Assembly: GCA_047495785.1 (NCBI GenBank)
Contig: JBLDXI010000045.1
Span: 310,001 to 374,000, forward strand
Source: Lepidodermella squamata
Taxonomy: Eukaryota > Animalia > Gastrotricha
Direction: 5' to 3'
DNA: 64,000 bases
The first letter of the stretch is position 1. Each line of letters begins with the position of its first letter. Shown here piece by piece: positions 15,401 to 47,066 of this stretch. Made by a program: the position numbers and the translations under genes. The notes below the pieces were generated by a model that saw only the letters and a list, made by a program, of their open reading frames with translations, made no database searches and was not told the DNA's origin.

Positions 15401-16284
15401 AAAGTCAGGCCCGTTACTCGGATCAAGATTTGCTTGACGAATCGAAGAGTGGGAGAAGCTCCATCGTTCGACGGGTCAGCGATCGGTTTCTTCAAATTCC
15501 CAACTCTTCGCAAGACTGGCCGAAAACGTCACCGGTTACGTCGCCGATGAGTGACTGCGCGTTATTATCGCCATTCAGCGGGTCATCGCCCGTCACGCCT
15601 CAATCGCCAACGTCAGACTTAGGACCGCCCGGGTTTATAGGCTTGAACGGTCGTAGGCTATCAGCCCCATATCCGGACGTATGGCAACGTTCGAAAAGTT
15701 ACGACTACAGCAATGACGTACTCACGAGGATGAATTGGAAAATGGAACTAAGCGCGCCGAGTTTACGCAAAAATGGCGACTCGAGTAAGATGATATACGA
15801 AGAGCTGCCCGAGCCCGAGCAGAGCCGGTACGACAGATCTCACCCGAGTTATCACCGGCGAAGTTGCTACGTCGGTAGTAGCAAACAGCCTGTTGCTATT
15901 CCACGGAATTTCCAGATGCAACAAACTCTCAACGCGCATATTCAACAATTTCTACCGTCGCATCACAAAAGCCTCGACGCTCAAACGTCGCTAGGCCAGC
16001 CGTTGCCGTCGCCGGCGCCGACGTCAATTCAGGAGTCGTTGCGGTTGAAGCAGGAGCAGAGTCTGGAGATCAGGCGGAAGATGAAGGAAGCTCAGGCGCA
16101 ACGGGCCAGGGCAATGAGCCGGCGGCGCAATTCAGGCGTGCCGGCTTCCTCGGTGCCGGAGGAATTTGCGCTGAATTACAAACATGCGCGCGCTGGCCGG
16201 GCCGTGTTCGATGTGACTGGCGAGCGGACAACTGGAACACGCGTGCATATGATGCGCCTAGTCAGCATGAACAAAAAAATATGA
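12451..16284 (+). CDS. Orphan single-pass membrane protein, about 798 aa, 3 exons
   Basis: Exons 12451..13332, 13743..14142, 15170..16284 join in frame at GT-AG sites (phase 0, then 1). TM helix VAILPMLGCLLLACVVVYLLISYF, a CFYNCC cluster, a long disordered tail and a C-terminal coiled coil. Confidence 0.75.
13377..13680. mobile_element. Intronic MITE-like element, same family as 52124-52372
   Basis: Imperfect TIRs aaggttccagc...gctgggacctt. The internal block cggaaaaatcactgatttgtaaaatc(a/g)atacttggaatcgatatcggc recurs at about 52192, and partly in inverted form at about 8200. Confidence 0.55.
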
Positions 16285-17723
16285 AGATCAAAAAATCTGA
16301 TAAAATACTACAATTATTCTCTATGTATTATTTTCGAATCACGCGGCAATAAAATTTTCTAATTTTTCTACTTCTTTCGAGTGACTTTTTTTGATGGTCT
16401 AAACCGGACGGTTTTCAGCGGCTCCTGCAGACGTTTTTGCTGGTTTTTAGACCGGATTAAACCGGACGCATAGTTCAGGCACTGTCTCAATAATCCGGTT
16501 TACAGCATTTCTCTTTATAAATGTACGTGATTTTTGGTACTCGAACCATTAATATTAATCATAAAAACGTACATAAAATCAATTACTAAATGATTAGGTA
16601 CCGTGCGCTGTCCTTTAATTTTTGAAGGCTATTCTTGGAAAAATTAAATGTTCAATTAGGCGAGATTGCTTCATAATTAGCCTTTTAACATTTTTAAGAC
16701 AGGTAGAACCCAGCAACATCTATTTCCGGCCTGCCGTATAAGTCGGTATTTACGGGCTTATATTGTATAATATTCAGAATTCAGACACTAATATAACACT
16801 AGTCCTACAATTCAGGAAATATATAACTGCGTAATAAAATAAACTGAGAGTCTCACATGACGGACCAGGTGTTTCATAAATTACCCCAGGCAACAATGAC
16901 TAAAATGTGCTGGCTATAATGCACTTGGGCGAAGAAATGCTGTCGTCGAAATATTTTTGTCACCGACCTATAAAGCCTACCAATACTGTATTTGTTCCTA
17001 TAGCAGCCCGCACTACTCAAATGTCAGCCTTAAAATTTTGAAAAATTCAAAAAACTAATTTTGGGAGAAGCCTTCATTTTTCGCGTTTCCGAACCGATCC
17101 CTCAGCCTTGGGCTACTTATCGAACTTTAGCAAACTATTTATCAACACATTTTGTCGGGTTTTCTTCGGTGAAATCGCGGATAAACTATGGGAAAAGCTT
17201 CGATTCGGGGAAACACTTGAATTTTGAGCTAAAAAAATCAGTGGCGCAACTTATGGTAGACACTATAAGCAGCAAAAGTCATATTCGTGGAAACTAGACA
17301 AGCTACAAAAGCGAAGTTATGTTGATCGCTGTATCATTTACTTCCAAGACCGCCGAACCAGATTCAATTCAAAAAGGTATAAGATTAAATAAAATTTTCT
17401 AATTTTTCTACTTTTTGAGTGATTCTTGATTGAATTTTTTTTGCGATGGAGTCGTCTAAACCGGACGGTTTTCGGCTCTTGCAGAAGGTTTTGCTGGTCC
17501 GATGGTCGTTTTTAGACCGGATTAAACTGGACGCATAGTTCAGGCACTGTCTCAATAATCCGATTTTTCATTATAAATGTACGTGATTTTTTGGTACTCG
17601 AAATGGCTTGGACCCCTGTTACGTATACTCATATACATCACACGGCTTTTGAGTTTGTCATTGTGGTTGAGTATATTATTGGGCAATTTTCCAACTACAT
17701 ATTATCCCGAGTGCGATCACAGC

Positions 17724-17731
17724 TATAAATA
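17724..17731 (+). promoter_or_regulatory. TATA box of the knottin gene
   Basis: TATAAATA 78 nt before ATG 17802, conserved in copy B (61243..61250). AATAAA lies at 18262 downstream of the stop. Confidence 0.65.
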
Positions 17732-17801
17732 CTTGTTTCACCGCAGAGTGTAGAGTGCAGCTTTATTCACAAAACATTCGTAACCTTTATAACTTGCTAA
17801 A

Positions 17802-18051
17802 ATGTCTCTTGGAGCATCGAAGGTTTTCATGGCGGCCGTTCTTCTGGCGTTCATTTTGATCGCCTTCATGGCAGAGCCCGCAGCCGCGTGTCAAAAACTG
17901 TTCTGGCATTGCGGGAAAGATTACGCTCCATGCTGCGGCAGCATGTAAGTTTTTTGTTTACCTCGACTGTGTCCCATCTACAATTTGCTCTTTTTTCTTC
18001 AATAGGCAGTGTAAGTGTGTTGGCGATTTGTGTACCTGCGAATTGATTTGA
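17802..18051 (+). CDS. Secreted 8-cysteine knottin (ICK), agouti/agatoxin-like spacing, 62 aa precursor
   Basis: Exons 17802..17944 and 18006..18051 (gtaagt...aatag, phase 2) give MSLGASKVFMAAVLLAFILIAFMAEPAAA-CQKLFWHCGKDYAPCCGSMQCKCVGDLCTCELI*. Signal peptide plus C-x6-C-x6-CC-x4-C-x-C-x4-C-x-C. Confidence 0.9.
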
Positions 18052-19548
18052 CCAATTGTCATTCAATATGTCACATGGTCCAAGGCGGACAATTCGTTGA
18101 GACCTGTCGATTCACTTCAAAATGCTACGGCAACAAAACACTGTATATCCTACCAAAATTGCCTTGTCATGAAGTAGTTATTACATATTTGTTACTTAAT
18201 CCGCACCGGCCATGGATTGGGCTTGGGGCGCGACAATTCATTTACACACCTTGTAAATCAAAATAAACAACTGTAACTGCTTACCAGTATTATTTTCTAT
18301 ATAAATGCCTGTGTGATTTATTTCAGCTCAGCACCCGGTTGTCAGCAGGTTTATTATTCAACACTTTAGGTAAAACGTGAAATGCATAGAGATGGTGAAA
18401 TGAGATAGAATTATCTAACAACTAGATATCATCTATCAGAGGAATTTTTCTAATTATTTCAATGCAAATCACGCGATTTTTTAAATTTTTCATTTTTTCA
18501 TTTACTTTTATAATGCGCGCATTTTTCATTTTTGTAATTCAATCAGAACGCGCGTCATACGAACAGAATAACAACCGTGACCTGTTCGTTTTCGGGTTTC
18601 GGTCGTAACATTGAATGTGTATGTAGATAACATATAAAACAGAAATAAGTATGCCGTTTTTTCAAGGCGCATCATTTGGTGCGTTAAAATATTCGTTCAA
18701 GCCCCAAAAATCCAAAATAGTGCCAAAAACACCTCTTATAGTTATTTATCAAGATTTTTCAGCCTAAAACGTAACATGTTTATCTGATAAGGGGTATAAA
18801 ACCTATACCGTACTTGTTTCTATCATTATATTATCATGGTCGATCATGAGCGATTGGGCTACTATTGGAACGGTAGTATACGGTATTATCCATATACTCC
18901 CCGGAATCGGAATCGGGGCACCTGATTACCCCTAGATAAATAGTTCCCAAAGTATAGGATCGCCTCAATCGATAATCGATAAAATCGGTAATAGGTAATC
19001 GATATCGAAAATGTGAGCAAATAGCTCCTATTATTAGGGTACGCTTTAAGCGGAGAATTAATATAGCTCACACACAAATCACCTGAATATCGCATCGCTG
19101 GAAATATATAATGGTTCATCGATTTTCGATTATCGAAAGTGAAGGCATGGACAGGGTAATATGATGTTGAAAAGTTGGTGTAAAATATAATCGTGTAAAA
19201 TACCGAAAATTAACGAACAATTTATAAACGAGTTTGTCGGGTTTTCTTCACTGAAATCGTCGATAAATCATATAAATCATAAATCATAGCTTCGATTGGG
19301 GGAAATTCTTGAATTTTACGCCAAAACTCAGTTGCACAACTTTGTACCAGCAGCAAAATTCATGTTAAAAAACGCATTTATATTGATCGCTGTATCATTT
19401 ACTTCCATTAAAAGGCCGCCGATCCAGAATCAAATAAAAAAGGTAAGATAACATTCAAAAAACATTCAAGCGGACGCAGAGAAATTGAATTTTCCAAGTC
19501 ATTACAATAATATAGGAAAGCGAGATCAGATGTCTATCGAATGAGTCA

Positions 19549-22500
19549 TCAAAATCGTGCAATTTGATCAATAGCTAAAGACTGCCGATGTTGGCACGTG
19601 ACACTGTCGCATTTCGAGCATTTATAAAATATCGTCTCATCAACTGTTTTGATTCTGCAAAGTTGTATCATTCTGTCATTGGAACAGCCGACATCCGGTT
19701 CTTTCGAAATTTCCGATTTCCGGCGACTATTCTGGCCATTATTGTCACAATGACTTAGTAGAGGAGATGTGTTATTGTCACCCGCATTCGTCGTTGTAGT
19801 TCGTCGAGGGATAAAATCGGTTGTAACAAAACTATTCTGCCGATGCCGACAGCCCAGTAATACCAGCATCGATTTCCGGATATCAGGCATTCTCAAACAA
19901 TATATCACCTTAGAATTGAATAAAAAAGTCAAATTTCTGATTCAATTGTTGAGGGTGTGACTTACAGGATCGATGACCGAGTTGAGGTGAAGAAATGCCA
20001 GGGCAATGCATAAATATTTGTTGAAAAACTGGTGAGCCGAAGCCAGGGTGTCTTCACTATTGAGCAAATACCCGACGAGCGGCGACCAGCACAGCAGGCA
20101 GGATAAAACTAGAAGCCCTGTTGTGAAAAAGCCACGGAACCGAGTTCGAGGGATCAGCTCGAAACCGCTAGATGCGCTACGATGGACCCTGTTCTTCTCT
20201 TGGAAAATCAGAGTTTGCTCCGCCAGTCGCATGTGGTGAAGTTGAGCCTAATAAATAGAGAAAATTGTCTAAAGATGCACAATTTTTGAATTTTTGAAAA
20301 AATCCCGAGAAATTCCGAAAATTACCAAACGAGTTAATTTTAAATGTATTGGGTAAATCGTGAATAAAGAATTAGGAAATTTCAAAAATTGTTACATTTT
20401 TTGCAAACAGTCTTTTCTTTTGGGACACGCTGTACATTTCAAAACTTGGCACCAAACGCTAAGTATGCGAAATGTCATTTTTTCGAATGATTTTGTTGGA
20501 GTGTGCTCTTAACGATGATGATAGGGCCTTCTACAAAAAATTACCAAGAATTCTTCAGTCATCTATTAGGATTTTTAATAGGGTCTAAATATTTGAACCC
20601 CTCTGCTAGATTTGAGATTCCAGCACTTAATTTTTCTCAATTCTTTGAGATCTCGGCTTTTTCTTGATTCTTGATTGATACTGTTTCATTCTACAGCAGA
20701 TATTCATCTAATCCTCCAAGTGCTCACTTCGAGGTCCTCTCAAACATACACTCTAGCAGTTTTACGGCTGGGCGGTAAGCTTCTTGCTTTATAGCTGGCC
20801 TGAGATTGCGATTGAACCGGTTCCAGCTGAAGAAACAAGTTACTGTCCGCGTTGCTGGTGTAATGAACAGAAGGCGATGGTAAGTTGTGATGGTTGTCAA
20901 ACGTGGTTCTTTCATTGAAGCTTTATTGAATGACGATGAGAGAGAGAGAGCGAAAACTTGCCAGAACGCCACTCTGAACAGTATCGGAGTATTGCATGCG
21001 TTTACGTTTACCGACGATTTTGGTGTCAACGGAACGAAGAAAGCGATCATCTGAGCCTCCTTGAGCTAATGACTGACGATTTCGTGCGAATTGCTTGTCT
21101 ATTAGACCCGCAGTTCAAGGGGTCTTATCTTGATGCAGATCTTACAGGGCGATCAATCAAGGCCGAGTAGGACTTCGAAGACATTATCACTACTATGTTG
21201 CAAGAAGCCACTGTTCAAATGAAAATACAAGCGAAGGCGGCTAAGAATATTTTCCCAAGCTCAGGCCAAGCAGCAACGCGACTACAATCGTCGGCATAAT
21301 ACAGGTCGAGCCTTCAAAGTCCATAAACACGAGGCGCCCCACGATTCTATGACCCGTTAACACCTGAATTCCCGAAACAGGAAACGTATCTACCACCAAC
21401 TGTAGCTAATTGAAAACAAAAATCGCGAGCCTAACCCAGCCAATTGTCATTTAATCCTCCGAGTGCTCTGAAGAAACATAACGTCTCACTTCGGGCTTCT
21501 CTCAAACATACACTGCTCTAACAGTTTCCAACGAACCAATCGACGAAATAAAAGGTTACATCGACGCACGATATGTCTCTTCGTCTGAAGCGTGTTGGCG
21601 AATACTGTCATACCCGATGGAGGAACAGTATCCTAATGTCGTCCGCTTGGATGTTCATCTTCCCAAAGAGCAAAACGTTTATTTCAATCCAATGCAGCAG
21701 TTGCAGCTTAACGATCGGCTTGCCGAGTCAACGCTCACTGCTTGGTTTCGCTACAACGCCAGCCATAACGACTCCCATCACGTCAAATACATGGATTTCC
21801 CTGGCAGTCACACTTACGACGATAAAAAGTGAGTTTGGACTAAGCGAAAGCGGGCCCCTGACCCTGCTGGGTTAATACCCTGTGGCCGAATGTACCAGGT
21901 ATCGCCAACGGCTGGAGAACTATATTACCTGCGGCTCCTTCTACTTCAGTTGCCGTGTTGCCGCTGTTACCCTAATTGCTTTTATCAATTTTTATCATAG
22001 ACGCCAGTCAAAGACGATTGATGTCCTGAAAATCTCTTTCTTCCGTTACCGCTACCTGAAAAATGTATGAATCATCTCTAATCTTTAGACTCATTTTTAA
22101 ATATTTCATGATCATATAACCATGATCGAAGCGAAATTTTCCTATGACACGGACACTCTGCTGGTCGATGTGACAACGCCATCGATCGCCGAGTTGCAGC
22201 AGGTCGCAATCGACCTGCTGCATTTCATTATTCCCAACAAAACTTCCCGCTGGTGTTCAAATATTTTGACGGCTCAGATTGGCTTACAGCTTACAGCCGT
22301 GAAGGATGCAACTTTTTTATTCGCTGTTTCTTATGAAAAAAGCATCTATTTTTTTAATTGAGCCTTTCTTGAAATTTGCGCTTTCTCGAACCAACCAAAG
22401 AAATTAGAGGTTATTTGCGCCTAAAAAGTGGTCGCCCAATGGAATACTTCTAAATGCGATTCTTGGGTGAGTTGAATATACGGATATTTGGCCACCCTGC

Positions 22501-25500
22501 GAAGGCTCCAAGTTAATGAAAATCATTTAAAAATCGTTGGATGTTTTTTCATTATACTAAGGCTATTCTGGGCTGGATTAAGGCCAAAGGCCTCAAAGGC
22601 CGCTATCAAAAGCCCAAATCTCCATTTCGACGTTGGGCTCGGCGATTAATGGCTCTCGCATTATTGCTCTCTACATGACATGAATCGCCAAGTCTGATTC
22701 CAACATTTGTTGGTAATAAAATTTTACTCGTTGAAGTTGTATTTTGTCAATGTAAACAAGTTAGTAATGAGAGGATTGACCGCGCACAGATGATTACTTA
22801 TTGCACAGGTGTGTTCTTATTGGGAAACTTGCATGGGGAAAGTTGAATGAATCGGACTTTGGTTCCACTCCCAGTCAAATTTGGTTCCGGTAAAAGTAGG
22901 CCTTTAATAATAAGACTTACCTGGGTGCAGGTGAAAATGTAAGATCCCAAAATTGAAACGAGTAGAATAACCATGAGAACACTGACGCTGAATTGAGTAG
23001 CAAACGAGTCGGAAAGATCGAAAATGTGCAGCGTGACGACTCCGATGATAACACTGGTCCATAGGATTGATAGAAAGATTTTCGGCCACTTGGGTTTCAC
23101 CATCAGCCGTTCGTAGAAAAACGGAGCTGCTATTGCGAGTACGTTGTCAAAACTCAGGCAAAACAGGCCGAGGGCGCTCATAATGTAACCGATTTGCCAC
23201 ACACCCTTCACGCCGGCCTTGGCGAGAAAGTCTACTACTACGGTTTGAGCAAGGTCCCAGCTATTGCTTTCGGTCGATGTTGCATTGTTACCAGGGTTGG
23301 ACGTTGTGCTTAGGAATGACGATGAGGCTAATGAATTCGTTGCGGATGAAAACCGTCGAACGCCTAACACATCGGGATCGCCGCATCGCTTTAGCAGTAA
23401 GGCTGTAGTCAGGACAATATCAGAGAACGATAAGCTAGAAAATACAGAAAAATGACCGTTAAAATTTACGAGGTGGCAAATAAAATAAAATAACGGAGTA
23501 TCCTAAATAAATTTCCTCAGAATTATGCTGGCTTATAGATGAACTTTTGCTTCAATGTCTCTTTTCATCCTACCAAATTTATAGGAAATAACGTGAATAA
23601 AAATCTCAAGTTGTCCTCGAATTTGCTCAAATAAAGCTCAATGACCGGAATTGCCGCCCTTTCAATGCAGCTCGAGAGCTTTCCCCTTTGCGACCTCAGA
23701 TTGCGAACGCGGGTTTTCCTGCATGGCGGAAATATGGTCAGAAGATCATAACTCAACAAGCAACATTATTTGCCTGACGGCAACCGTGAATTAATTCAGA
23801 AAAAATCTTTCATGTCGGCCCGTGAATGTGGGCCATCGAGGCGGCGATTGTCATCTTCGGAGCCGATGCCCTTGTCAGCTCGATAATTGAACCGAGAAGC
23901 AGCCGCAGCCCGCGTCAGCCGATCACCGAGCGGACCCATGGCGACCAGTTGCGTTTGCTCAAGAGTACGTGATTTAATTGAACTAGTTTTTCATTATTGC
24001 TCAACCATTGTTCTAGTTTTCTGCCGATCAATTTTTTTATCGCCTCAACTGTTTCTTTTTCTGTTTTTTAGAAGCTCTTCAAAGTCTTATCGGGGACGAA
24101 AACGCGGCCTTGAAGTGGGTCCAGGTTCGCGACGCTGTCAATCAATGGGGCAACGACGAGGCCTCCCGGCGAGCTAGCCGCAATCAGCCATCAACGTCCG
24201 ACCTTGGCGACCTAAGCTAAGATCTTCCAAGATATTGCAAGATCGTGCAGGAACTTAGCCGATCTTGTTTGATCATTAAAGATACTTGCTGATCGTCACA
24301 GCTGCAGCGAAGAATCTTGCTAATCTTGCTTGACCAATTCTCCTGGGTTGTTTCTGCTTTCTTCCTTCTTTTACTCCTTTGTTGTAACTCTAGCGAGTAT
24401 TATTAAATGAGGTACAATTGACAGTAAAAGTGACAAAAAACTTTCAGTCCTCAGTCATCGATTCCGATCTAATTACACCCGGTTCCGCGAGGTTCACGGC
24501 CGCAACAAGCGGTCTGGTGTCAAGCTGCGTACCTTTAAATACTACGACTGGTTGAAGCGGGTCATGGGCGACAAAGGTGCTGTCGATCCGAACTTCATAT
24601 CTCAGTTCAGTCACATAAATGGCTATTCATGGTCTTCCCATAAATGCTGAGAATCGTCAGCAAATTTCCAGTGATGACAGCGATGAAGATTCAACTAAGA
24701 ACAGCGAGAAAATTAGGAAAGAAGACTGCTGTGAAAAAGCCGAGAAAGGTCATTTTGAGTGATGAGGCGGTTTTTGTTGCAAAACAAGCAGGAATTTACA
24801 AGAAAAAAGTTCGAACACTTGCGTACGGAACCTTATCGTTAAGGTGGTCGAGGTGGGGGAAAGTGGGTACGACTCGGCTGCCCTGAAGGTCGCCTCGAAA
24901 CGAAGTTCAGGATGGAACAGGTTCAGCTGCTGAAAGGCGACGCGGCTCCTTTCGAGGTGCCCGACAAAGACATCGCTTATTGGATTGCTGCGATTCAAAC
25001 GAAGAAAATTTTTGTCTTTTCTTATTGTGTAGTAACACCGAACGCTGATGAAGGTGTTTCGCGCTTTATTGTCCCTAAACGGTGCGAACTGATCACTGAG
25101 ACGGGTCATGCCTGAACAAACGGAATTCAACTGTGATCGAAATCAGGCTTCAGCGTCTTCGACAACAACTGTGCAGCCAGTAATCAACAAAGCCGATATG
25201 AAATAATATTGGAACTAATTGCGGAAAATTCAGGTGAATGCTTTGGAGGAGCATCAGCTAGGGCACGTCATCTCAGCTAGAGGGATTAATGAAAGCAGAG
25301 GTGAACTAAGAGAATCGCATGCCGAGCTGCTACAAACCGAGATTCCCGAATTGACCGCGGCCAAAATCCGATGCTACAGGCTTGGCGTTAGACCTGATCT
25401 TCGCAAGAGATTGCCACCTCTTCTTGTCAAAGTCAAAATTCTTGACCACAATGGAAAATATTTCCCAACAATGCCTCGCAAACTACAAGCCAGACTACGA

Positions 25501-28500
25501 AAATCCGACTGTCAACATCATTAGCTTCAAACCATTTCAAACTAAGTTTCGAACGGAACTGAAAAACCTGGTTTTCGAGAAGATTTCTGAGCTCAAAAAA
25601 ATCGACGCGAACGTCTATGGTAAGGATGGCTTTCTGCTGAAAACAACGCTGGGCAATAAATGGATCAATTAATGCCAGCCTGAGAAATAATATAATTATA
25701 AAGTCTTCTATAACCCGAGGTCACCCTTATTCTCGTTACGATGTTGCTCATCCTGATGGTTCTTATAGATATGCTACTTCTGCTCCTTCTCATAATTTTT
25801 TCTGAATAGAATTTTGAATGTTTGGAATAATTGACCTCGTTATAACTTTTTGCCTTTGACAGAACGCTGCCTCTTAATGTACAAAATGAGTTCTTCAAAA
25901 AATTCAATGATTTGAATCAATGAATATGCACCATCTCCTTCAATAAATGGCAGATCTCATGTTTCCACTGCCAGTTACTGAGTCACCATACAGATCGAGT
26001 TTTGCTTATACTGACTACTGTCTTCGCGGTTTGGCTTCGAAAACGAAATCGTCAGTACTTCTGTACAGGAAAGATGTCATCATTCTCGAAGAAATTGGTC
26101 TGGTTTCCTCTGAAACTCTCGAGGTGATCGACCTTGTCATGAGAACCCTGACAGGTTTGTTAATTCCATTATAAATTCTGAATGTACCTCTTCAACCTAT
26201 TCTAGGATTGAATGCGAAAGTGGGCGGTAAATTGATAATCGCCACCGGTGACTACAGCCAGCTCAAGTTTATTGACGGCCGGTCGTTTTGGGAGTCAACG
26301 CAGCTATACTTGTGCGACGTTGCACTACTGAAGCATTTTGTTCGAGCCGCACAGGATCAACTGCTACAGCAAGCCCTAAATGTTCTGCGCCACTCAGTAT
26401 TGGATGAAGCGGATCGGCGCCTGGTCGTTGAGGCAGTCAGCGGCTGCTGCAAGTTCTATAATGACTGGTCGGACGTGCCTTTTGATGTGCAGCGTCTCGT
26501 GCCTACTCGCAGAGCCGAACAAGAAGTCATACACAATTTTCTGGCTGCATCGGAGCGCAGCTGACAGCTGATGCTCGGGACGAAGTTCAACGTCAGGGCA
26601 TATGGGTGGCTACGCTTCGCGGCGATCACAAAAACTACCTTGATCGACTAACGCTGAAGCCGCAAAAACTCACGCTTTTTGTTGGGGCAGTCGTCTGCAT
26701 GACGTACAATTTCAATGCTTCGTCACCTGCCAGTTCCTTCTCACAAGGTCAACTGCAGATGGTGCGAAAATCGTTCTTAAGCTTGTTCCGCCTGGTAGTC
26801 GCGACATTGAACAAAGCGCCGGCTGGACAACAATCACAGTTGGTCGTCATGACGAAGACAATGTCGTTTTCGGCGAAACGAAGCAGCATCTCAGGCGTGT
26901 TCAATTTGGCATTCGCCACTATATCGCGTCGACCATCCACCGCATTATGGGTTCAACTTGTGAAAACGGTGTAGCTGTCCAGATTTCTCATGCGGAAACA
27001 GATTACATCCTTTCCGGAATTTTTCCAATCGCCACTTACCCTCGCGGACATCTTGTCGCTGCAACCGCCGCCCATTCCGAGGCAACGCCAACCGCAGCCG
27101 CTAGTTCTACCTGTCGAGGTAGACACGTGTCACTGTGGCGACGAGATTTTCGGTGCGTGCTGCTGCGCTTACCATCAGGCGCACTTTCCGGAGCTGCTAT
27201 GCCACGACCACTTCATGGCCAGCCAGTGCAGCGCTCCGCAGGAGGAGAACACGCAAGGATAAATCTTTCAAACAAGTCGCTACTAATGGTGTCTTTCATC
27301 ATTAGGGCCCGGTATCGCCCCTATCCGGGGTCACAATGCCTCGCGTATTTGTCGACCACCACCGAGTAGACACACTACGGTGCTTGTCTATGAAGGGAGG
27401 GGCCCTTTCTTTAATAAAACTCAAATGCATGTATTAACGGTATTGATTGATTGATTCAATTTTACTTACACATTTTACTTACACATCTATATCCATTCTG
27501 TGTTCCAACTTTTTCGGGGTGAGGGGGATCCACATCTCCTCCAATGACCTGGAGAGGGGATCACTCATAGGGGTAGTTCGAGTTATTACGCCGTGCGCAG
27601 CACCCAGAAGAAAATAGAGAGAAAAAACAAGAAAAGGCTCCGCAACACCTCTCGTCGTCAAGTTCTGATTAAATGATTAAATGATTCAATGATGAAAAAA
27701 ATTTAATGATTCCTTCGCGATTCCTTCATCCGTTCTAGCAACCGAAACTCTTGGGCGCGTGGCCATCGGAACTTCGTTTTGGCAGCAAAATAATTATTGA
27801 ATTTGTGAGCAAAGTTTTACAAAAAATCATAAGTTTGCCAAACTTGCGATGGATTTCCCATTATTTTCGTCAAAAATATGACTTCAATTCAAATTTGTTT
27901 ATGTGGAAAAAGTACGGTTTCGTGAATTTTAAAGATAAGATAGATTACTTTATACCTGATTAGCACATAATGTCTGAGATACTTTTGATTGACTCGAATA
28001 ACAGCAGCTATAGCCAACTAAACAAAAATGTAATTTATTACAGTGATGCCTATACTTGGGTGCCTTACCGAATTGAGCACTATCGCGAGAATTATCAGCG
28101 GAATTGCGATTGACAGGTAATATCTGAAATACTTCAAGTTGACCAAGTGCAAGAACTCCTCCAGCGACTCTGATATGTAATATATCGGGCATTCCAGCGC
28201 GAATTCATTTGTCGATCGGTCGTAATGTTCAACTATTGTTATCGGAGTTGTTGAAGCGTTTACCGAAGAAGAGAAATTACTCTCGTTCGACACAAATTCT
28301 CTTTCATCGAGAGAAATAATTCCGCATTTTGCTTGAATGCCTTTAAGGTCGACAAAGGCCCAGTCTTCAGGCTTTGAATAGCCTTTGCTAGTGAACATGT
28401 GCTGAATGATAGTTTCGATGAGAGCGCCAAAATCTGAGTAGCCGCCAACATCAGAAATCTCCAGGTACTCCTCGGGAGATCGAAGGACATCTTCATGCCC

Positions 28501-28515
28501 TTTCCCAGGGTCCAT
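19549..28515 (-). CDS. Class A GPCR, melanocortin-receptor-like (MECA group), about 554 aa, 5 exons
   Basis: Exons 28515..28069, 28017..27956, 23434..22921, 20247..19966, 19908..19549, all GT-AG and phase consistent. TM1 ...LAIVLNSLAIAAV; TM2 SLSFSDIVL; TM3 LFCLSFDNVLAI; TM4 ILW; very short ECL2; TM6 CWSP; TM7 NSVIDPVIYCLR. Confidence 0.88.
21000..21170 (+). mobile_element. hAT-transposase-like fragment
   Basis: IACLLDPQFKG resembles the hAT LDPRFK motif. The fragment is short and decayed. Confidence 0.45.
21541..21950 (+). mobile_element. Helitron Rep/helicase fragment (degenerate)
   Basis: DEIKGYIDARYVSSSEACWRIL...VVRLDVHLP...STLTAWF...GRMYQVSPTAGELYYLRLLLL is the typical Helitron RepHel central region. 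It contains an internal stop. Confidence 0.85.
23826..24347 (+). mobile_element. Right end of a CMC/EnSpm-like element carrying a BEN-domain-like spliced ORF
   Basis: Exons 23826..23964 and 24072..24220 give ...IFGADALVSS...LRLLKKAL...KWVQVRDAVNQ. These are followed by clustered (c)aagatc/gatctt subterminal repeats ending at ...ctcctggg. Confidence 0.4.
24783..24980 (+). mobile_element. Ginger2/KRBA2-like integrase C-terminal fragment, related to 34193-34425
   Basis: RLGCPEGRLETKFRMEQVQLLKG is nearly identical at the DNA level to the copy in the furry intron. Confidence 0.55.
25947..27000 (+). mobile_element. PIF1-family helicase pseudogene (transposon-borne, Helitron-like)
   Basis: Motifs VIILEEIGLVS, GGKLIIATGDYSQL, LKHFVRAAQD, VCMTYN, SQGQL and ASTIHRIMGST. 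It has an intron at about 26155-26206 plus frameshifts and stops. Confidence 0.75.
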
Positions 28516-29264
28516 ATATAAAATTAATTAAAACAAAAACTCTTCTGAATAAATTGAGTGTATATGGAAGGCTTAGAGGGAAATAGAAGATAGATCAATG
28601 CCAGTGCAAAGGCTTTTGTTTCTTCCTTAAAGAAAAATAGATCCATATTTCCATAAATTATGCACACAGTGTTTAAAAAAAAACCATTGATAAAAAGGCA
28701 TCGGTCAAGTGCGATTGGCTGAGAAATAAGGGAGTTTACCCTAAGCAGGAAATAGCAGTCATTACGCGACCACTAATTTCTTCTTGCGCATGTTTTGACG
28801 TTTTGGCTTCCGCTCCTGATTAGCCCCGCTGACGATCGTGTTTTTTGCGACGAGCCTGCGTGCTGATCGATAATATACTGCCTTATTATCGTCACTTTTC
28901 CGGATAAATAATAAAACATCTTCAAATAAAAGAATGCACTATTTTTACCAAAAAATTGCAATTTTTATTTGCCATGGAAAAACGGGAGAGAGAGAAATCA
29001 TTTTTTGAAATGCGTACTTCATCCGCATCGTCGTACTATACATAGACACTAGAGAAATAATCATTGGATTATGAGACGATGAAAATAGTTAATAATAATA
29101 ATAATAGACTCGATGCAAGCGCGCGTAAAAATTCATAGTGTAATGAAACAAAAGAATGAAAGCAACTCGGCAGAGAGAGAAAGAGAAAGAACGAATTATC
29201 ATTTTCATAGAAAAATCCCGTCGATTATTAAATCGCATCACGTGCTTGTAGGTCAAAAATAGCA

Positions 29265-32200
29265 TTATTGATCACCGGGTTCCGCATGGCCGTTGTCCTG
29301 ATGGCTCGCGAAAGTGACAAATGTCGGCACGGGTGAATTCGAGCCCGATAGACTGCTTCGGGCGGAATGTTTATGAACAGGCGATGGTACGTTGATTTGT
29401 GGCGATGACGATCGCCCAGGCAACTGCGGCGATGGGGGAGGCAAAACAAAACGGCGGCGCGGTGAGGGCGACGGTGAGGCGGATGAAACCAAGCGAACCG
29501 GGTGCTGCTTCGCCTCTTGAGCCAAGTTCGCCAGGACAACCGCGCCCGCTGAGGAAGAAAACGTCGACGGCGGAACGCTTTGACGGTCTGATGGTTTTCG
29601 AGGGTGGGAGCCAGGTGGTTTCTGATCACCGGCTTGTTCGCTAGGCAGCGATGAGCGATGTCTGTTACCGATAGCGGCGGCCACCACGTCGGTTGCTGTT
29701 GAGAATGAACGGGTGACTGGTCCGGCTAGCGGGTTGCCAAGATTGATCGCACTCAAACGAGGCAAATGAGACGCTGAAAAAGGAAAATAGCATTAATTGA
29801 TAATTCGTGAATAAGTGGAAAAATTAGAGCGTCTTAAATATTGTTAAATATAGACGGGGCTGAAGTTGGGCTATAGTGAAAGCATTACCAAAATATTTAA
29901 ATCTAAACCTAAAGAACTGAGTTCAGTACCAAATCATTTAATTCATTACCAAATTAGTGAATTCTTTACTTCACCTAAAACTATTGAATTTAATACTCAT
30001 CCTAATTAATTCAATAAAAAATTTCTCGTCCTGTCTGCTCAAGGTGGAGAATTTCAGCACGGTTTTCAATTTATTCGTCAAAAGTCTTTCAACTGCCGAT
30101 AATCCTAATCTTCGCTTTATTTTCGAATTCAGCTGCTCTTTCATCTTCCCCTTCTCCCTTTTCAGCAGCCACTTGATACGTATCGCCGGATTTCCGCTTA
30201 CAGGTACCCAATAGTTTGAAACGATAAGCTCGATTCGCCTCGAACGCGGCTACCAACGCAGTGCAACCACTTACCGCCGATGAGGCTCGGCGATCACACT
30301 CAAATATTTTTTATACTCTAATCAAAGCAACTCAGTCTAAGCATGCCATCTCAAAAGCATTCGCTTCAACTTTTATCTCGTTCTCTTGCTAATTTAAAAG
30401 GCATTTTTTATATTTTCTTGTACAATTAGCTCGCCTCAATGCTCTCCGTTAGCGTCGACGACCTGTGCTGGAACCTTGAACACGGCCTGGGCCTGGACTT
30501 CGAAGATTTCGAAGTCATTTTCGATATTTTTCTAAATCGCAATGACAGCTCGGTGGAATTCAAATACCTCTGCAGGCTGCCGCGTGAATCTTCCGCTTTA
30601 ACTAGTTCAAATGGGGATTTAATTCTGCGCGACACAACCCTGCGAGTTTTTATACTCGAAATAGCGACCAGCTTCAAATGGCCTTCTTTAAACAGCTGGT
30701 ATTCCCCTGCAGTATACTTGCCGATGGGTCATCTTATCACAACTGCGACTCGGGTTAAACAAGCTTGAGGAGGAATTAAACGCCCAAAATCCGAATTGGC
30801 GGTAAATCGAAGGTTTATGCTTTGAAAACATGCGAATTTCAAGGATTATTTTACATCATTTATTCAAGGCCAAGCAAACAGGACCAACATGGTTGTTTAT
30901 GCCCCTGATCTTACCGCTGCTGTTGTAAGTGAATCCAGATTTTCATGACTTGATCCAACACTTATTCTTACCGGACAGAACAAACGTGGGCGAAAGAAAA
31001 ACGCTTCCCTTACTAGACTTTGATTCCTACTGAAGGCAGCGCGGAATCCAAATCTCTGAGCTCGTTCGAATCGTGTCATGCTATTGGAAATGCTTTTTCC
31101 GAAAGATGTTTCCTTGCCATCACAGTAGAGTATGGATGACATATGCCCAGGTGAACTCTGCCAGAACTTGTTCAGGCTGAATGGATGCATGGCTAAAGTG
31201 GAATTAGGTGAATGCTCAAGTATGAATTGTCCGAGAAAAGCTGCCTATGAAATCCAACTCTACAATCCTTTCTTGTGGCTCGAACATCGTGTGTTTTGGC
31301 GCATATTAATATTTTGTTTTACTTCGTTAATACTTCGTTTGAATTCAGATTCAAGAGTAAAGTCGACCGCAGCCGTGCACTGGCCCTAAGGATGCCGAGG
31401 AATTGTGAAAATCGTAGATGCGGGCTACCTGTCGTAAACGGTCCGTGTACACAGGCTGCCGGTGAAGCGATGCCGTGGCTTAGCTTTCTCGCTTTTCCAA
31501 TTATGCCGGTGCTTCTGGTGGTGTTGTGTGCAGTGCATGATTTGGACGAAGCAATAGCCACCCGAGAAAAAGGAGACTGGAAGAAATTTACCCCGAAAAC
31601 CGTTTGGGAGAACAACTTCGACCACCCTGTCTGGGCTCCTCTGCTGGATCTCTCATGCTGCACTCAGTAAATTCCTCTTTACATACTTATGTTACAACCC
31701 AATAATGATTTGTGCGCAAAAATCGACGTAATGCGATTCGACCTGGAGCATTGACCATAATGCGTATGGTGGAATTTGATAAGGCAAAACAAGTCGGATC
31801 GGACACTTACCATATTCACGTGCGAGGTATTGATTTTAAAGCTAGGTTTTATGGGTTTAAGATTTTTGCCTTATTGGATCAAAAATGCGCCACCTGCAAT
31901 GATGGCTTTGCACTTCAAGCCTTCAAGCTGTTAACACATTACGTTTATGAAATCCGGCCGTTGCCAATTGATAGGGAAGAAGAGCACGTTCTCCTGCGAA
32001 ATGTGAGAATTTGTTTCTTCAAGTATGCTCGGTAGCATATGTAGCGACGTATTTGCTTCCAAACATTCTGGCAAGAGTTTTTGCTGCAACAGCTTTCGGC
32101 AGCAAGTTCAGACGGTTTTTTCTGCTAGCTGCTCGGACCCGTTGGAGATGAAGTGGTTCAATAAAGTTTTGGTTTTTTCTATTTTAAAGTTTGGGAAGGG

Positions 32201-35200
32201 GTGAGATAAAGTCCCACTCCAAGACGGCCGGGAGGGGAATTCCTAGGGGTATTTAATGTCCTCTACCAAGCGGAGCTTGAAGGAACAGCGCCTAGCTGCC
32301 AAAGCAAACAAATAAATCCATAATTCCACGAGTCCCATATTGCTGGAATGCATTGCTGGAGCCCTAAATGCCAAGAGCACACCCTTAAAGCCACTTTAGT
32401 AAGGCCAGCGCTTTCAGGCATCGGTTAAATAAATGTGCGATTTCTGAGAAACAGAACGAATCTGCGTCTCCATGTATTTAGAGTAGCGCTTTCCAGTACC
32501 TATCTCAAATTCTTCAATTATTGGAGACAAGCTTGGCTTCCACATTGCCCAGGCAAATTGGAATAGTATACTCTAATTCAGGGGTAAGGATATAATAAGC
32601 ATAAAAAATGAGTACCAACCTGCAGCTGAAAGATGAGCAGATGCGACACTAGCCGAGGGTGGTGGCTTGAAAACAGCTGCATCGATTTGCATCGCCTGCA
32701 ACACGTAGAGAGTCGAGTCGACAAGCCTCAAATTCGCGTCATCCCACCCATCGACACCGTCAATGAGCCCCAACTCCATGTCATCATGCGTACTTTCCGA
32801 CACCAAAATCACCTTAGTCGTCGGCTCGGCTAAATGACGTAGGGTCGGCGACTGCGAGCAAATGCACCGCCAAGCGAAGTTGGCAGTCCGAGAACACACT
32901 GCGACTACGCCACTGCATAGGACAGTCAATCTCCTCGCGTTGTTTTGACCACGCGGTGATGATGGAGCTAAAGCATCCATGAAAGCTTCAACCGCGTCAC
33001 TGACCTCGCCTAATCCGAAAACCAACGCATCCAGATCAGGCCCAGGTAACTGGTTCAAGGAGCTTGGCAAAACAACGACGAGAGGGCAGTCTGGAGCCTG
33101 GGCAGCGGCGGAGGCTGCGAGAATTAATGTCCCGATGTGGGCGTCTTTCGCTGTGTTAGAGCTCGCTTGATTCTGCATGGCTTCGATCGCTGAACTCAGC
33201 CTTAAACATGCCTGCCGGCAAACACGCGGTAGAAGGAGTAACAACGAGGCTATTGTCGAGAAGCTGGCATCTTGCAGGTTCGAATGCGCCTCGCTATCAG
33301 CCGCCATTTGCTGTTCAGTCTCCAGTAGATCGGCCTGGCGCAGGAACGCGGCTATTGCGTCTGATTCTACGGAGATTGATAGAACCGGGGCTTGAGACTG
33401 GTGTTTCCGCCTTAATAATAGTAACTGCTCGACAGCTGCGACTTGGCGGGTTGCGTCGTCGCCCAGCGCCATTGGGTCGTTGGTTGCGTTTGTTGCTAAA
33501 CAGCTTGCTCGATCGCTGCCGACCAGGCTCGACGCGCTTGATTGCTGGCTATTTGCACTTCCGGACAAACTTCGAGTTTGATCATTTTCATCCGAATGCT
33601 GAAAAGAATACATGAAAGATTAATCGATGCATCAAGAGTGTTAGCCCTCAGAGTGTTAGGATGCGAAGAATTTGGTTTAATTCATCAATTTCCCAATCTA
33701 AACTCTAGGAATGTTACCACAGCTGGTTGTTTCTTCCTTTAATTTGGCTACAATGCTCCCCGGAAACTCTGCTCGACTTCATTGAACTATACTCACTCCT
33801 GCTAGGTTGTCGAAGTCGCCGGAAGAAGGCTATTTTCCTAGTCTTGTACGCTACCCTGCACGCTATTTCATATTTTTCTGAATGCCTAAGACTTAAATGA
33901 CAAAAACACAATGCTCGAATTTTCAATACTGGTATCGCTCCAAAAAATGTTTCAACCTGTTGCCAAAAAACTCTTTTTAATAAACAGTCCTGGAGTCCTT
34001 GGTTGCCTATAGAGCCCCTGTAATTCGCTGCCTTGGGTCCTCCTCTATAAGGAGACTGTTGGAAATGCAAGCCCACTGCATTCGAGCCTTGATCGATCTG
34101 CCCTTCGAACAGAAATGATAGACCATTGACTCCATTGGCGATAGCAATTTTTGCTTGCTCATTCCTTCAGGAAATATTTGGTGTATCGCGTATAAAAGCA
34201 GGAATTTACAGTAAAAACTTGCAGGTCGGCGATTACTGTCTACTACCCATCGCTAGGCCAGATCGATCGAACTCTAGCGCACGGAACCTTTTTGTTAAGG
34301 TAGTCGAGGTGGAGAGCAAGTAGGTTCGACTCGGCTACCCTCAAGGCCGCCTCGAAACGAAGTTCAGAATGGAACAGGTTCAACTGCTGCAAGGCGCCGC
34401 GGTTCGTTTCGAGGTTCCCGACAATCATTTACGAGAGTCCAGGATCAATGCACCCCAGCATGTACAATGGTGGTAGGAGACCTAAACCGCCATTTCTACA
34501 ACTCGTTCAAGCAACTAAACGTTTCGGTCTGAAGCAATTAGTTAAAGAACCCACTCGCGCCAGCGGTGGTATTCTTGATCAAGTATTCACAGATCGACAA
34601 ATCGAAGTCGAGAAACCGAAGGTTAGCGACTACAATCCGGTCTCCATTACCTTGAATCTGGATATACAGGTCAGATCAATGCCGCCGAGAAAAGTGTGGA
34701 TATACGAAAAGGCCAACTGGAGTCAGCTAAATCGACTGCCTTATGCTTTTTCGCACGTTAATCTTCCTGACGTGATCGAACCAGAATCCCAAATTCAGGC
34801 CAAGCACCTAGTACACCCAAATCCTATACCTGATATTTCGGAGTTAATGGCTTATAGCTTTCATTTTTAGGGTTAATCTTGAACCCATTATTGAAATAAA
34901 TTTATCGCGAACAATTATCGAACGCGCGAACAATTTGCCACAAATGCTGCCGGACCGAGAGCTGCTTCTGAGGCGCAGTCATCGCGCTTTGATTCGCGAG
35001 TCGTCTAATCGTGGCCTGTTGGTCATTGCCATTCGATGCCATAACAATCAACTGCTCGTCCGAAACTTGGCTCGGGTCGAAGTCGAATTCCAAGGTTCGA
35101 CCAGGCAGATCCCGTCTCAACCCGAGAACTGTGTCGAAATCGATCGAAGTATGCGCGAGGGATTGAGATGTAATCGAGACTGGCATATTCGATGGGGCGT

Positions 35201-45678: not shown

Positions 45679-47004
45679 ATGGCAATCGTTGGAAGGCGAG
45701 TAGTTATTACTGGAATGGGGACGGTTTCCCCGTTGGGATGCACGTTATCCTCGTTCTGGACCAAGTTACTTTCAGGCGAATGTGGCATCGTCAGCCTAGT
45801 CGAGCCTAGCTATGAGGGCCTGCCTTCCCGAGTGGCAGGAAAAGTTGACGAGAAAGCACTTGGTCTCAAATCTGCAGATTTTAATAAAAATTCGCGTGCT
45901 TCAGTATTTGCCCTAGATGCTGCAGAGCAAGCATTGATAGATGCAAACTTCTCTCCTCAGAATCTTAATGACACATCTAACATTGGGGTGATGCTTGGCG
46001 TGGGAATGGTTGATCTCGCTGACGTCTATAATCAGTGGGATTTGTATTCAAAGAAGGGCTACAATAAGGTTTCGCCATGGTTTATTCCTAAGGTATTGCC
46101 CAATCATGCCGCCGGAGTTTTGGCTTTAAAATACAAAATAAACGGCCTCGTGCACTGCATTTCAACTGCTTGTGCTACCGGCGCTCATGCTATTGGAGAT
46201 GCCTTTCGTCTCATCAAATCCGGTGAAATCGATGCCGTTCTGGTTGGAGCAACTGACTCGAGTGTAAACCCGTTGACCGTGGCAGGATTCAGCCGTATGC
46301 GCGCTTTGTCAACCGAATGTAACGACAATCCTACCAAGGCGTCTTGCCCCTTCGACGCGAAGCGCCATGGCTTTGTGCTATCGGAGGGGGCAGCTGTAAT
46401 GCTACTGGAGTCTGAAAGTCATGCTTTGTCTAGAAAAGCTCCTAAAATATATGCTGAAGTAGTTGGGTACGGCTTCAGCTCGGATGCACATCACATATCT
46501 GCCCCACCCCCAGATGGCAAAGGAGCTATAACAGCTATGAAGAATGCGATGAAAATGGCAAGTATCAATCATGAAAGCGTTGGCTATTTATCGGCTCATG
46601 CAACCAGCACACCACTGGGTGACGCTGCCGAAGCAGCTGCAATTTGCTCAACATTTCCTACTTCATTACCTTACGTTTCCTCTATGAAGGGGGCAGTTGG
46701 TATGTAAAAACGATTTGTACTGTGACAAATATTAAGTTCAGTTTCGCCAGGTCACTTGTTAGGAGCTGCAGGCGCAATAGAATCTGTTGCTTCCGTTCTT
46801 GCCATACACCATCAAAAGATACCTGGAACAACCGGGTTGAAAACTGTAGATACCAATCTCCCGGGTAAATTTGTTGAGAGGCTGCTCGTGCATGGCGCGG
46901 TTAAAGACTTCCCCAAAGGTTCGGATGGCCGTAGAATAGCGTTGAAAAACTCATTCGGTTTTTATGGAGCCAACGCTTCTGTCTGTTTTGCTGAATATCG
47001 ATGA
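45679..47004 (+). CDS. OXSM: 3-oxoacyl-[ACP] synthase, mitochondrial type (FabF-like)
   Basis: Exons 45679..46699 and 46751..47004. Motifs RRVVITGMG, TACATG (catalytic Cys), AHATST, GHLLGAAG, NSFGFYG. Confidence 0.95.
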
Positions 47005-47066
47005 AATTTTAAATTAATTTGTATCCTTGAATATGGTTAATAGGGGCTTTAAATTTCTGAATTGGG

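Follow-up and report, generated by a model that had tools for sequence, protein, structure and literature searches.

Two convergent genes in the window

The window (the whole 64,000-nucleotide stretch of DNA that was analysed) contains a gene for a secreted knottin with eight cysteines (17802-18051, plus strand, two exons) and a gene for a class A GPCR of 554 aa, termed receptor A (28515-19549, minus strand, five coding exons). Both models were confirmed by cDNA contigs. The genes are convergent, and their stop codons are 1497 bases apart, in agreement with the 1.5 kb given in a preliminary description of the locus. That description had also joined five ORF pieces into one seven-transmembrane receptor, which was borne out by cDNA joints and by homologues. 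The features of the two genes are as follows.

17654..18329, plus strand: duplicating unit of the knottin minigene, about 0.6 kb, with promoter, both exons, intron and 3' UTR; common to nine other loci
17802..17944, plus strand: knottin exon 1, an ORF with signal peptide and mature cysteines 1 to 4; GTAAGT donor, phase 2
18006..18051, plus strand: knottin exon 2, cysteines 5 to 8 and TGA stop
28069..28515, minus strand: receptor A exon 1, N-terminal ectodomain of about 130 aa and first part of TM1 (...IVLNS, N1.50)
27956..28017, minus strand: receptor A exon 2, end of TM1, ICL1 (KYLRH), start of TM2; splice sites present
23435..27955, minus strand: receptor A intron 2, 4.5 kb, with repeat- or transposon-like ORFs on the plus strand
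22921..23434, minus strand: receptor A exon 3, TM2 to TM5; cDNA coverage
19966..20247, minus strand: receptor A exon 4, ICL3, TM6 (CWSP), Cys-free ECL3, TM7 to NSVIDP; cDNA joints on both sides
19549..19908, minus strand: receptor A exon 5, VIY, helix 8 (CLRMPDIRKSM), 100-aa tail, stop at 19549-19551

The knottin intron (17945-18005, GT..AG ends) is skipped exactly in a cDNA contig, giving the joint 17944>18006. The 5' end of the mRNA lies at about 17772-17789, and a loose cDNA end at 17772 carries what we take to be the SMART template-switch oligo. An AATAAA is found at 18262, 3' of exon 2; cDNA coverage on the knottin side stops within the bin 18048-18246, and the bins from 18247 to 19241 have a coverage of 0. 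The product consists of a signal peptide and a 33-aa peptide with the cysteine spacing C6C6CC4C1C4C, which ends in ELI without an amidation signal.

In receptor A, exon 1 (donor GTAAGG) has homology with the N-terminus and TM1 in two paralogs, B and C, as well as in a relative's ortholog. A loose cDNA end from exon 3 matches 27958-27987 exactly and thereby confirms the junction of exons 2 and 3. Introns 3 and 4 were confirmed by the cDNA joints 20246>22920 and 19906>19964, and homologues back the junctions FTCTQ/AQLHH and IDP/VIY. The relative's gene is intronless where receptor A has intron 2. A 157-bp repeat in this intron (24811-24967) recurs at 34267-34424, and the two intron ORFs tested gave no Pfam match. 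Exon 3 encodes SFSD in TM2 (D2.50), a long Ser/Thr-rich ECL1 with a conserved KRCGD, DNV in place of DRY in TM3, TM4, a Cys-free ECL2 of about 9 residues and a TM5 without Pro; exon 4 has a weak Pfam 7tm_1 match. TM7 is NSVIDPVIY. The very short Cys-free ECL2, the TM5 without Pro and this TM7 motif, all named in the preliminary description, were read directly from the sequence.

A 43-kb repeat and the second copies

Self-comparison of the window together with 60 kb of downstream contig revealed a tandem repeat. Unit 2 (58967-104399 in extended coordinates) reaches 40.4 kb past the window end, and the units have a mean identity of 96.1% (range 90-99.8%).

16041..58967, no strand: tandem repeat unit 1, 43 kb
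57873..58943, minus strand: 3' part of receptor paralog B (TM5-TM6, TM7, tail), severed by the repeat junction at 58967
61325..61574, plus strand: second knottin copy (exons 61325-61467 and 61529-61574), identical peptide, one silent difference
63707..64000, minus strand: last exon of the second copy of receptor A, the remainder lying beyond the window; copy intact

The repeat may represent uncollapsed haplotypes that the assembler placed in tandem. The donor of the second knottin copy is weakened to GTACAT. Between the two copies of receptor A there are 24 synonymous and 6 non-synonymous differences (pN/pS 0.077), by which measure the gene is under constraint. The recurrence of knottin and receptor at 61325-64000, noted earlier, is real; as a specific co-duplication of the pair it does not hold, because the whole 43-kb block is repeated, including at least four unrelated genes (furry, a ketoacyl synthase, an NSD-type methyltransferase and a threonine-synthase-like gene). 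The adjoining paralog is likewise receptor sequence, but only the 3' fragment of paralog B. The complete gene, which includes the N-terminus and TM1-4, closes unit 2 and is found 45 kb further downstream, outside the window.

The knottin family and its likenesses

A genome search with the knottin gave 11 matches; these yielded models of 9 distinct genes and of the block duplicate, and the intron position is identical in every model. The 0.6-kb minigene with its two exons occupies at least 10 loci dispersed across the genome; most of them, together with three receptor loci, sit on the 926-kb contig of the window. In blastn comparisons the unit is 72-84% identical to the paralogous loci, homology ends at the borders 17654 and 18329, and receptor sequence is absent from it. 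Among the paralogs, the signal peptide has 79% identity versus 47% for the non-Cys mature residues. The mature peptide is rather conserved in 6 of 9 paralogs (CQKLFWHCG...), which would equally suit a signalling peptide.

The only matches of the knottin are weak ones to spider toxins (Pfam Toxin_9, E 0.57; Tsp1a, E 0.59; JZTX-3, E 1.7) and fall below every significance threshold, a level at which homology and convergence are indistinguishable. CQKFLWTC...PCC of Tsp1a aligns with CQKLFWHC...PCC of the knottin. Compared with spider ICK toxins, the last loop of the knottin is shorter and its host is an animal without known venom. We take the eight-cysteine frame with a double CxC to be the mu-agatoxin frame, and Toxin_9 is presumably the mu-agatoxin/curtatoxin family. 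Cleavage of the signal peptide would release a peptide of 32-39 aa that has four disulfides and shares its cysteine frame with spider ICK toxins. Once secreted, it most likely serves in defence, as an antimicrobial or as a channel modulator.

Protostomes have endogenous orphan peptides with eight cysteines in an agatoxin frame, the CCWamide/agatoxin-like peptides (ALPs), in which an aromatic residue stands between Cys6 and Cys7 and the C-terminus is aromatic-Gly; their mature part is encoded entirely by the final exon and is preceded by a cleavage site that an intron interrupts (PMC8557429). That the knottins are neuropeptides of this kind, with a receptor that may or may not be the neighbouring one, is improbable in our estimate, although the eight cysteines in an agatoxin-type frame, Toxin_9 as the best Pfam match and the conservation of most mature sequences are in its favour. 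One paralog, at contig position 166.9 kb, has an aromatic in the same interval from Cys6 to Cys7, and its terminal Phe-Gly could be a signal for amidation. Against this stand the knottin intron, which falls within the mature peptide, separating Cys4 from Cys5, the lack of a propeptide or basic cleavage site, and the ELI end of the window peptide. The dispersed copies and the more strongly conserved signal peptide are also more effector-like.

The preliminary description had proposed an agouti-like ligand. The peptide gave no match to the Agouti Pfam domain (PF05039) at E values up to 10, no such match was found anywhere in the genome, and the PDB sequence search gave no match to AgRP or ASIP. 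The knottin shares with Agouti/AgRP that it is a secreted cystine-knot peptide, and the agouti frame also starts C-x6-C-x6-CC. It differs in having 8 cysteines, not 10, in lacking the RFF loop and the N-terminal extension domain, and in belonging to a multigene family. Given the missing Pfam and PDB matches, the cysteine number and the absent RFF, the peptide is not agouti-like.

The receptor family and the linkage

The genome contains five loci of the receptor family, A, B and C on the window contig and D and E elsewhere. Only 3 matches were obtained among 1.84 billion representative proteins, and the members found outside this genome come only from metagenome contigs of a related animal. To judge from these searches, the family is a small, lineage-restricted group of rhodopsin-class GPCRs. 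Among its own traits are a helical N-terminal domain (100-130 aa) and an ECL1 Cys, both conserved, DN[V/F] in place of DRY (Asn for Arg3.50) and a TM7 position 7.49 that is D, N or K.

A profile of the family aligns with MC1R-MC5R as a single stretch from TM1 to helix 8, and among solved proteins these score best (MC4R 58.3, MC3R 58.0, MC5R 54.9, MC1R 52.0 and MC2R 51.6 bits), with CB1 at 56.3, within 2 bits of MC4R. The amine receptors D2 (51.3 bits) and beta-1 (48.2 bits) follow at a margin of only about 7 bits, or 2-7 bits when CB1 is counted with them, and part of this margin may stem from the short loops, which incur no gap penalties when aligned to melanocortin receptors. S1P and LPA receptors were not among the best 60 profile matches. 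In Foldseek, four MC4R entries ranked first, whereas VIA-align placed S1P1 (21.4) and CB2 (21.2) before MC4R (21.1); some of its alignments extend into the helix preceding TM1. Among solved proteins, the family profile thus indicates the melanocortin receptors and CB1 as nearest relatives, and the fold comparison MC4R, S1P1 and CB2.

The architecture is that of the melanocortin/lipid-receptor (MECA) group: a short Cys-free ECL2, no TM3-ECL2 disulfide, [D/N]PxxY, no TM5 proline, and a TM5-ICL3 region and helix 8 like those of melanocortin receptors and CB1. The melanocortin-type motifs singled out earlier do align with MC4R (TM5-ICL3, ...Y.F....AQLH..RLA; helix 8, Y.LR..[DE].RK); Y5.58 and CWxP are retained, and receptors A, B and D and P0004 have the melanocortin-type DPxxY. 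CB1/CB2, S1P1 and LPA1 likewise lack the TM3-ECL2 disulfide and the TM5 proline. Unlike these lipid receptors, the family has no DRY, and a non-rigorous inspection revealed no conserved pair of a basic and an acidic residue that would hold a lipid head group.

The calcium/ligand site E100/D122/D126 (EDD), a fingerprint of the melanocortin receptor family (PMC11430673), is absent, being Lys/Lys at the TM3 positions of receptor A and mostly Asn in other members, and R147 of MC4R is replaced by N. With the EDD site and R3.50 missing, receptor A is not a melanocortin receptor. The family further differs from MC1R-MC5R in its N-terminal domain, its long ECL1 with a conserved Cys, an ECL3 without cysteines, its variable 7.49 and its host, a protostome with no detectable agouti gene. 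Protochordate 'MCR-like' orphans, class A receptors nearest to melanocortin, CB, LPA and S1P receptors, also lack EDD and did not respond to MSH or MC4R ligands in experiments (Ji et al. 2024, PMC11430673). They occupy the same logical position, with no demonstrated kinship, but keep R3.50 and have a long EL2.

Descent of the pair from a bilaterian agouti/melanocortin system previously thought to be limited to chordates appears extremely unlikely. In its favour, the profile search has the five melanocortin receptors at its head and the knottin starts with an agouti-like spacing. However, the genome has no Agouti domain match, the peptide lacks the agouti hallmarks, the receptor lacks the EDD site and R3.50, 7.49 varies so that DPxxY is not fixed, and CB1, S1P1 and CB2 score equally well. 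According to published work, melanocortin receptors have been found only in chordates, and even the protochordate look-alikes do not bind MSH (PMC3622036, PMC11430673).

A ligand-receptor module that arose by convergence, independently of agouti/AgRP, with the knottin or its family naturally activating or antagonising receptor A and the paralogous receptors, is in our analysis very unlikely. In its favour, the two genes lie tail to tail and are both transcribed, the receptor has the open, short-ECL2 build of receptors accepting knotted peptides, and most knottin loci share the 926-kb contig with three receptor loci. Vertebrate AgRP and ASIP are knottin-like peptides acting on MECA-type receptors, and the idea of a pairing is not absurd. 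Yet linkage is not a property of the families: no receptor was found next to the other 9 knottin loci and no knottin next to the other 4 receptor loci, leaving one of about 10 and one of 5 as neighbours. The minigene duplicates without receptor sequence, the apparent co-duplication is an effect of the 43-kb block, and the acidic pocket of melanocortin receptors is missing.

Microsynteny, proposed earlier as a check, showed no conserved linkage of the two genes in the one relative compared. There, the order of furry, a small gene and the receptor is kept, and homology ends after the receptor, exactly between receptor and knottin. No knottin-like exon was detected in the 3.1 kb past the relative's receptor, nor in related contigs amounting to about 80 kb; the comparison covers one contig with this 3.1-kb flank, from an animal that may lack the knottin family altogether. 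The missing linkage counts only as circumstantial evidence against a pairing. When 9 knottin and 3 receptor loci are placed at random on the 926-kb contig, about 10-25% of the arrangements would, by a rough estimate, have one knottin at most 2 kb from a receptor gene or within it, and the observed adjacency is therefore not beyond chance.

Knottin and receptor A are real, expressed genes that are probably functionally unrelated and came to lie tail to tail by chance. Receptor A presumably functions as an orphan seven-helix receptor, and the loss of Arg3.50 suggests that its coupling to G proteins may be atypical.

Gene models of the knottin and the receptor

Run X2 was taken as cDNA because its contigs span exons and leave introns uncovered. 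One of them leaves out exactly 17945-18005, with GT..AG at the ends, and the gene of the window knottin, a secreted peptide with eight cysteines, is thus real and transcribed. A loose end of an X2 contig sits at 17772, on the 5' side of the gene; if its sequence is, as we presume, the SMART template-switch oligo, the mRNA would start about 15-30 bases before the ATG. The mature peptide comprises 33 residues with the cysteine spacing C6C6CC4C1C4C.

Coding exons of the window knottin and of receptor A (554 aa)
17802-17944, plus strand: knottin exon 1, signal peptide and first four cysteines, ending in a phase 2 GTAAGT donor
18006-18051, plus strand: knottin exon 2, remaining four cysteines and stop codon
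28515-28069, minus strand: receptor A exon 1
28017-27956, minus strand: receptor A exon 2
23434-22921, minus strand: receptor A exon 3
20247-19966, minus strand: receptor A exon 4
19908-19549, minus strand: receptor A exon 5

The preliminary description had assembled receptor A from five scattered pieces, and cDNA joints together with the homology of exon 1 back all five exons. cDNA contigs connect 22921 with 20247 and 19966 with 19908, and the cDNA sequence that continues upstream of exon 3 is an exact match to 27958-27987. Exon 1, 4.6 kb off, is assigned to the gene because its N-terminal domain and TM1 have homologues in the opening exons of the paralogs B and C, and because the ortholog in a related animal has the same N-terminal and TM1 parts within 1.4 kb. 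The stop codons of knottin and receptor are convergent and 1497 bases apart, in agreement with the distance of about 1.5 kb claimed earlier; about 1.1 kb between the two genes is without cDNA coverage.

Two copies of receptor A are present, separated by 24 synonymous and 6 non-synonymous differences. With a pN/pS of 0.077 between them, the receptor is under strong purifying selection and still functional. Its gene spans 9 kb in the window vs 1.4 kb in the animal from which L036 derives (metagenome contig ERZ27333047 k141_917470, carrying the receptor ortholog), and the introns in the window have thus been enlarged by repeats. A 157-bp repeat is common to receptor A intron 2 (24811-24967) and the region of the furry gene (34267-34424), with 87% identity. 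The same intron contains transposon-like ORFs at 25219-27369 (plus strand), two of which were run against Pfam and gave no match.

The receptor family and its likeness to melanocortin receptors

The family to which receptor A belongs has five loci in the genome. A (present twice), B and C share the window's contig; D lies on contig 15, and E is split over contigs 25/26. When 1.84 billion representative proteins were scanned in full by HMMER with the TM2-5 exon, there were only three matches; their metagenome contigs come from one or two related animals. A word-indexed protein search with P0004, a full-length family member from a metagenome contig, found only its own cluster, and the family profile added one fish TAAR and one unnamed protein. 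In the language-model-based ESM Atlas, P0004 is surrounded by generic clusters of class A orphan receptors, mainly from cnidarians. Members of the family are recognised by a helical N-terminal domain, the motifs K-x-x-R-H (ICL1) and S-x-S-D (TM2), KRCGD behind TM2, DN[V/F] replacing DRY in TM3, WxP (TM6) and [D/N/K]P[IV][IV]Y (TM7).

Seven helices, sequence motifs and a Pfam match place the family among the rhodopsin-class (class A) GPCRs. N1.50, D2.50, W4.50, CWxP and [N/D]PxxY are readable in the receptor A model, and full-length P0004 scores 34.9 bits with 7tm_1 (PF00001; cut-off 30.5 bits). Single exons of receptor A stay below this cut-off, with almost no Pfam matches exon by exon, and the window's contig is absent among the 150 matches listed for a 7tm_1 scan of the genome, which appears to be blind to the family. 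The AF2 model of P0004 (pLDDT 73) has seven helices and reaches Z 21 to solved GPCRs. The [D/E]RY motif was found in no member that includes TM3 (A, B, C, D, P0001, P0002 and P0004, the last three from metagenomes); all have DN[V/F], at 23128-23136 in receptor A, and in the alignment to MC4R D146 is matched while R147 (3.50) stands opposite Asn. Arg3.50 is near-universal in class A GPCRs, and its loss possibly hints at atypical G-protein coupling in the family.

The features on which the comparison with melanocortin receptors had been based can all be read in the sequence: an ECL2 of about 9 residues (DLSDSFATQ) without Cys, a TM5 without Pro, NSVIDPVIY in TM7 and SYIFTCTQAQLHHMRLA after TM5; TM6 has CWSP. 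Melanocortin (MCR), EDG and cannabinoid (CB) receptors are not known to have the TM3-ECL2 disulfide or Pro5.50, and receptor A likewise lacks both, with Lys at position 3.25. Its very short ECL2 resembles that of melanocortin receptors, as does the loop of about 6 residues in the P0004 model. Single family sequences gave weak, mixed matches to solved GPCRs. With the family profile, MC4R was the best of the solved proteins (58.3 bits, E 6e-15), followed by MC3R, CB1 (56.3), MC5R, MC1R, MC2R, D2 (51.3), alpha-1A and beta-1, so that the MCRs and CB1 lead the best amine receptors by 5-7 bits. Foldseek with the P0004 model listed MC4R as its top four entries, MC4R leading by less than 2-fold in E-value; VIA-align with the same model was headed by S1P1, CB2 and MC4R, in a list in which every row was tied. 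The MECA cluster comprises the melanocortin, EDG (S1P/LPA), cannabinoid, adenosine and GPR3/6/12 receptors. The melanocortin/MECA-like look of the receptor is therefore genuine but shallow, and the score may be flattered by the short MCR loops.

The fingerprint of melanocortin receptors is the EDD calcium/ligand site, formed in MC4R by E100 (TM2) and D122 and D126 (TM3) (PMC11430673). In receptor A, aligned by HMM to MC4R, the two TM3 positions are Lys and the TM2 position is not acidic; other family members mostly have Asn at 3.29. Protochordate "MCR-like" receptors that lack EDD give no response to melanocortin ligands (PMC11430673). The DPxxY of TM7, which had been listed as a melanocortin trait, is present in receptor A but variable in the family, being NP in paralog C and the ortholog P0001, and KP in paralog E. 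Judged by its residues, receptor A fails the melanocortin fingerprint. The missing EDD and the Asn at 3.50 speak against membership in the melanocortin receptor family.

The knottin family

The window covers 310001-374000 of contig 45, which is 926 kb long. In the assembly (121.2 Mb, 151 contigs), at least 10 loci of the knottin family were found; the window copy, one of them, also has a block duplicate.

Knottin loci in the genome
Contig 45 (the window's contig), 93-98 kb: four loci
Contig 45, 167 kb: one locus
Contig 45, 221-226 kb: three loci
Contig 45, 328 kb: window copy, plus its block duplicate
Contig 17: one locus

Gene models were obtained for every locus except one, each with two exons and the intron between Cys4 and Cys5. 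The DNA common to the loci is a 0.6-kb minigene (17654-18329). Mean identity among the paralogs is 79% in the signal peptides and 60% in the mature peptides (47% without cysteines). The frame C-x6-C-x5/6-CC-x4-C-x-C-xn-C-x-C, which marks inhibitor cystine knot peptides of the spider-toxin type (secreted, 30-40 aa, with knotted disulfides), is found in all nine modelled paralogs, and CQKLFWHCG... in six of the nine mature knottins.

The suggestion that the window peptide is agouti-like found no support. Agouti/AgRP antagonise melanocortin receptors, which are activated by peptides derived from POMC. It does not match the Agouti Pfam profile (PF05039) at E values up to 10, and in the whole genome no Agouti domain was detected at E up to 1, a search that short split exons could escape. 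Agouti proteins have 10 cysteines in five disulfides and an RFF receptor-contact loop, whereas the window peptide has 8 cysteines and no RFF, and it was rejected as a member of that family. The only Pfam match was the spider toxin family Toxin_9 (E 0.57), and the only PDB sequence matches were the tarantula toxins Tsp1a and Jingzhaotoxin-3 (JZTX-3; E 0.6-1.7), all of them sub-threshold; AgRP and ASIP were absent from the latter. By its sequence, the window peptide would be classed as a spider-toxin-like knottin that belongs to a dispersed family. Its gastrotrich host is not known as a venomous animal. A word-indexed protein search with knottin exon 1 gave nothing. A single-sequence AF2 model of the 33 residues, an implausible flat four-strand meander (pLDDT 85) without a PDB match, was discarded.

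A similar 8-Cys frame occurs in the CCWamide/agatoxin-like neuropeptides (ALP) of protostomes, which have no known receptor (PMC8557429). Their precursors consist of a signal peptide, a spacer and a basic cleavage site split by a phase-2 intron; the mature 8-Cys peptide is encoded entirely in the last exon and has an amidated aromatic C-terminus (PMC8557429). In contrast, the two-exon window knottin has its phase-2 intron inside the mature peptide, between Cys4 and Cys5, lacks spacer and basic site, and ends in ELI. These three points speak against an assignment to the CCWamide/ALP type. In the most divergent paralog (contig 45, about 166.9 kb), an aromatic residue stands between Cys6 and Cys7 and the last two residues are Phe-Gly, possibly an amidation signal; such an aromatic residue and an amidation-type end are both listed for CCWamide/agatoxin-like neuropeptides (PMC8557429).

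Linkage of the two genes and the 43-kb block

Knottin and receptor had been proposed to form a linked, co-duplicated ligand-receptor module. No receptor of the family lies near any other knottin locus, and no knottin near any other locus of the receptor family. On L036, furry, a small gene and the receptor ortholog follow one another as they do in the window, where furry spans 42.3-32.6 kb and the receptor starts at 28.5 kb; homology stops directly after the receptor. No knottin-like exon was found in the 3.1 kb downstream of the L036 receptor ortholog or in the other approximately 80 kb of related contigs examined. The conserved neighbour of the receptor is therefore furry and not the knottin. 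Microsynteny with L036 covers 19.8-42.3 kb of the window; the relative is known only from metagenomes.

The recurrence of the knottin and the receptor 3' end at 61325-64000 is real, but what recurs is the entire interval 16041-58967 as a tandem repeat, whose second unit extends 40.4 kb beyond the window end. Among the other genes of this gene-rich 43-kb block are furry and those for a ketoacyl synthase, an NSD-type methyltransferase and a threonine-synthase-like protein; ORFs that gave no Pfam match occur in it as well. The receptor paralog described at 57873-58940 is indeed paralog B, but the block junction at 58967 cuts this gene and leaves only its 3' part (57873-58943). The assembly has just two copies of the block, both on the window's contig, with a mean identity of 96.1% (range 90-99.8%). 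This divergence equals that of evident duplicate contigs elsewhere (contig 25 vs 26, 95.6%) and is near the published heterozygosity of about 3% for Lepidodermella squamata (2.99%; PMC11660948), and the repeat may thus be two uncollapsed haplotypes laid in tandem rather than a true duplication. Duplication or haplotype alike, it says nothing specific about the knottin-receptor pair, and the proposed module is left without support.

Large indels between the block copies lie at 18325-18928 and 61997-63222, in the spacer between knottin and receptor, and a contig of the DNA run has a 607-bp deletion form (joint 18321>18929). Paralog E is found both on contig 25 (2.207 Mb) and on contig 26 (0.490 Mb), and over 3.2 kb the two contigs share 95.6% identity. 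Other GPCR matches come up again on contigs 26 and 49 with the same scores; both observations suggest haplotig redundancy in the assembly. Elsewhere in the window, 4191-4945 and 6201-7345 are adjoining paralogous genes with C2H2-type zinc-finger-like ends and 73-79% DNA identity in parts; there is an internal tandem repeat at 6433-6860. The ORFs 742-1515 and 2631-3506 (plus strand; 257 and 291 aa) are similar to each other and by look resemble tandem hydrolase paralogs.

It is very improbable that the gastrotrich knottins are ligands or modulators of these orphan MECA-like receptors, with the pair in the window as one matched couple. If this were true, the pair would be the first such knottin-GPCR system outside vertebrates and would bear on the origin of the agouti/melanocortin system; signalling by cystine-knot peptides through GPCRs would have evolved independently in a protostome, in parallel to agouti/AgRP with their melanocortin receptors. 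As a lesson from this locus, what looks like co-duplication in this assembly can be an effect of block repeats or haplotypes. Gastrotrichs have a small, constrained family of orphan GPCRs that are melanocortin/lipid-receptor-like and lack Arg3.50, as well as spider-toxin-like knottins that are expressed and form a dispersed family, and both are useful entries for the study of GPCR and peptide-toxin evolution.
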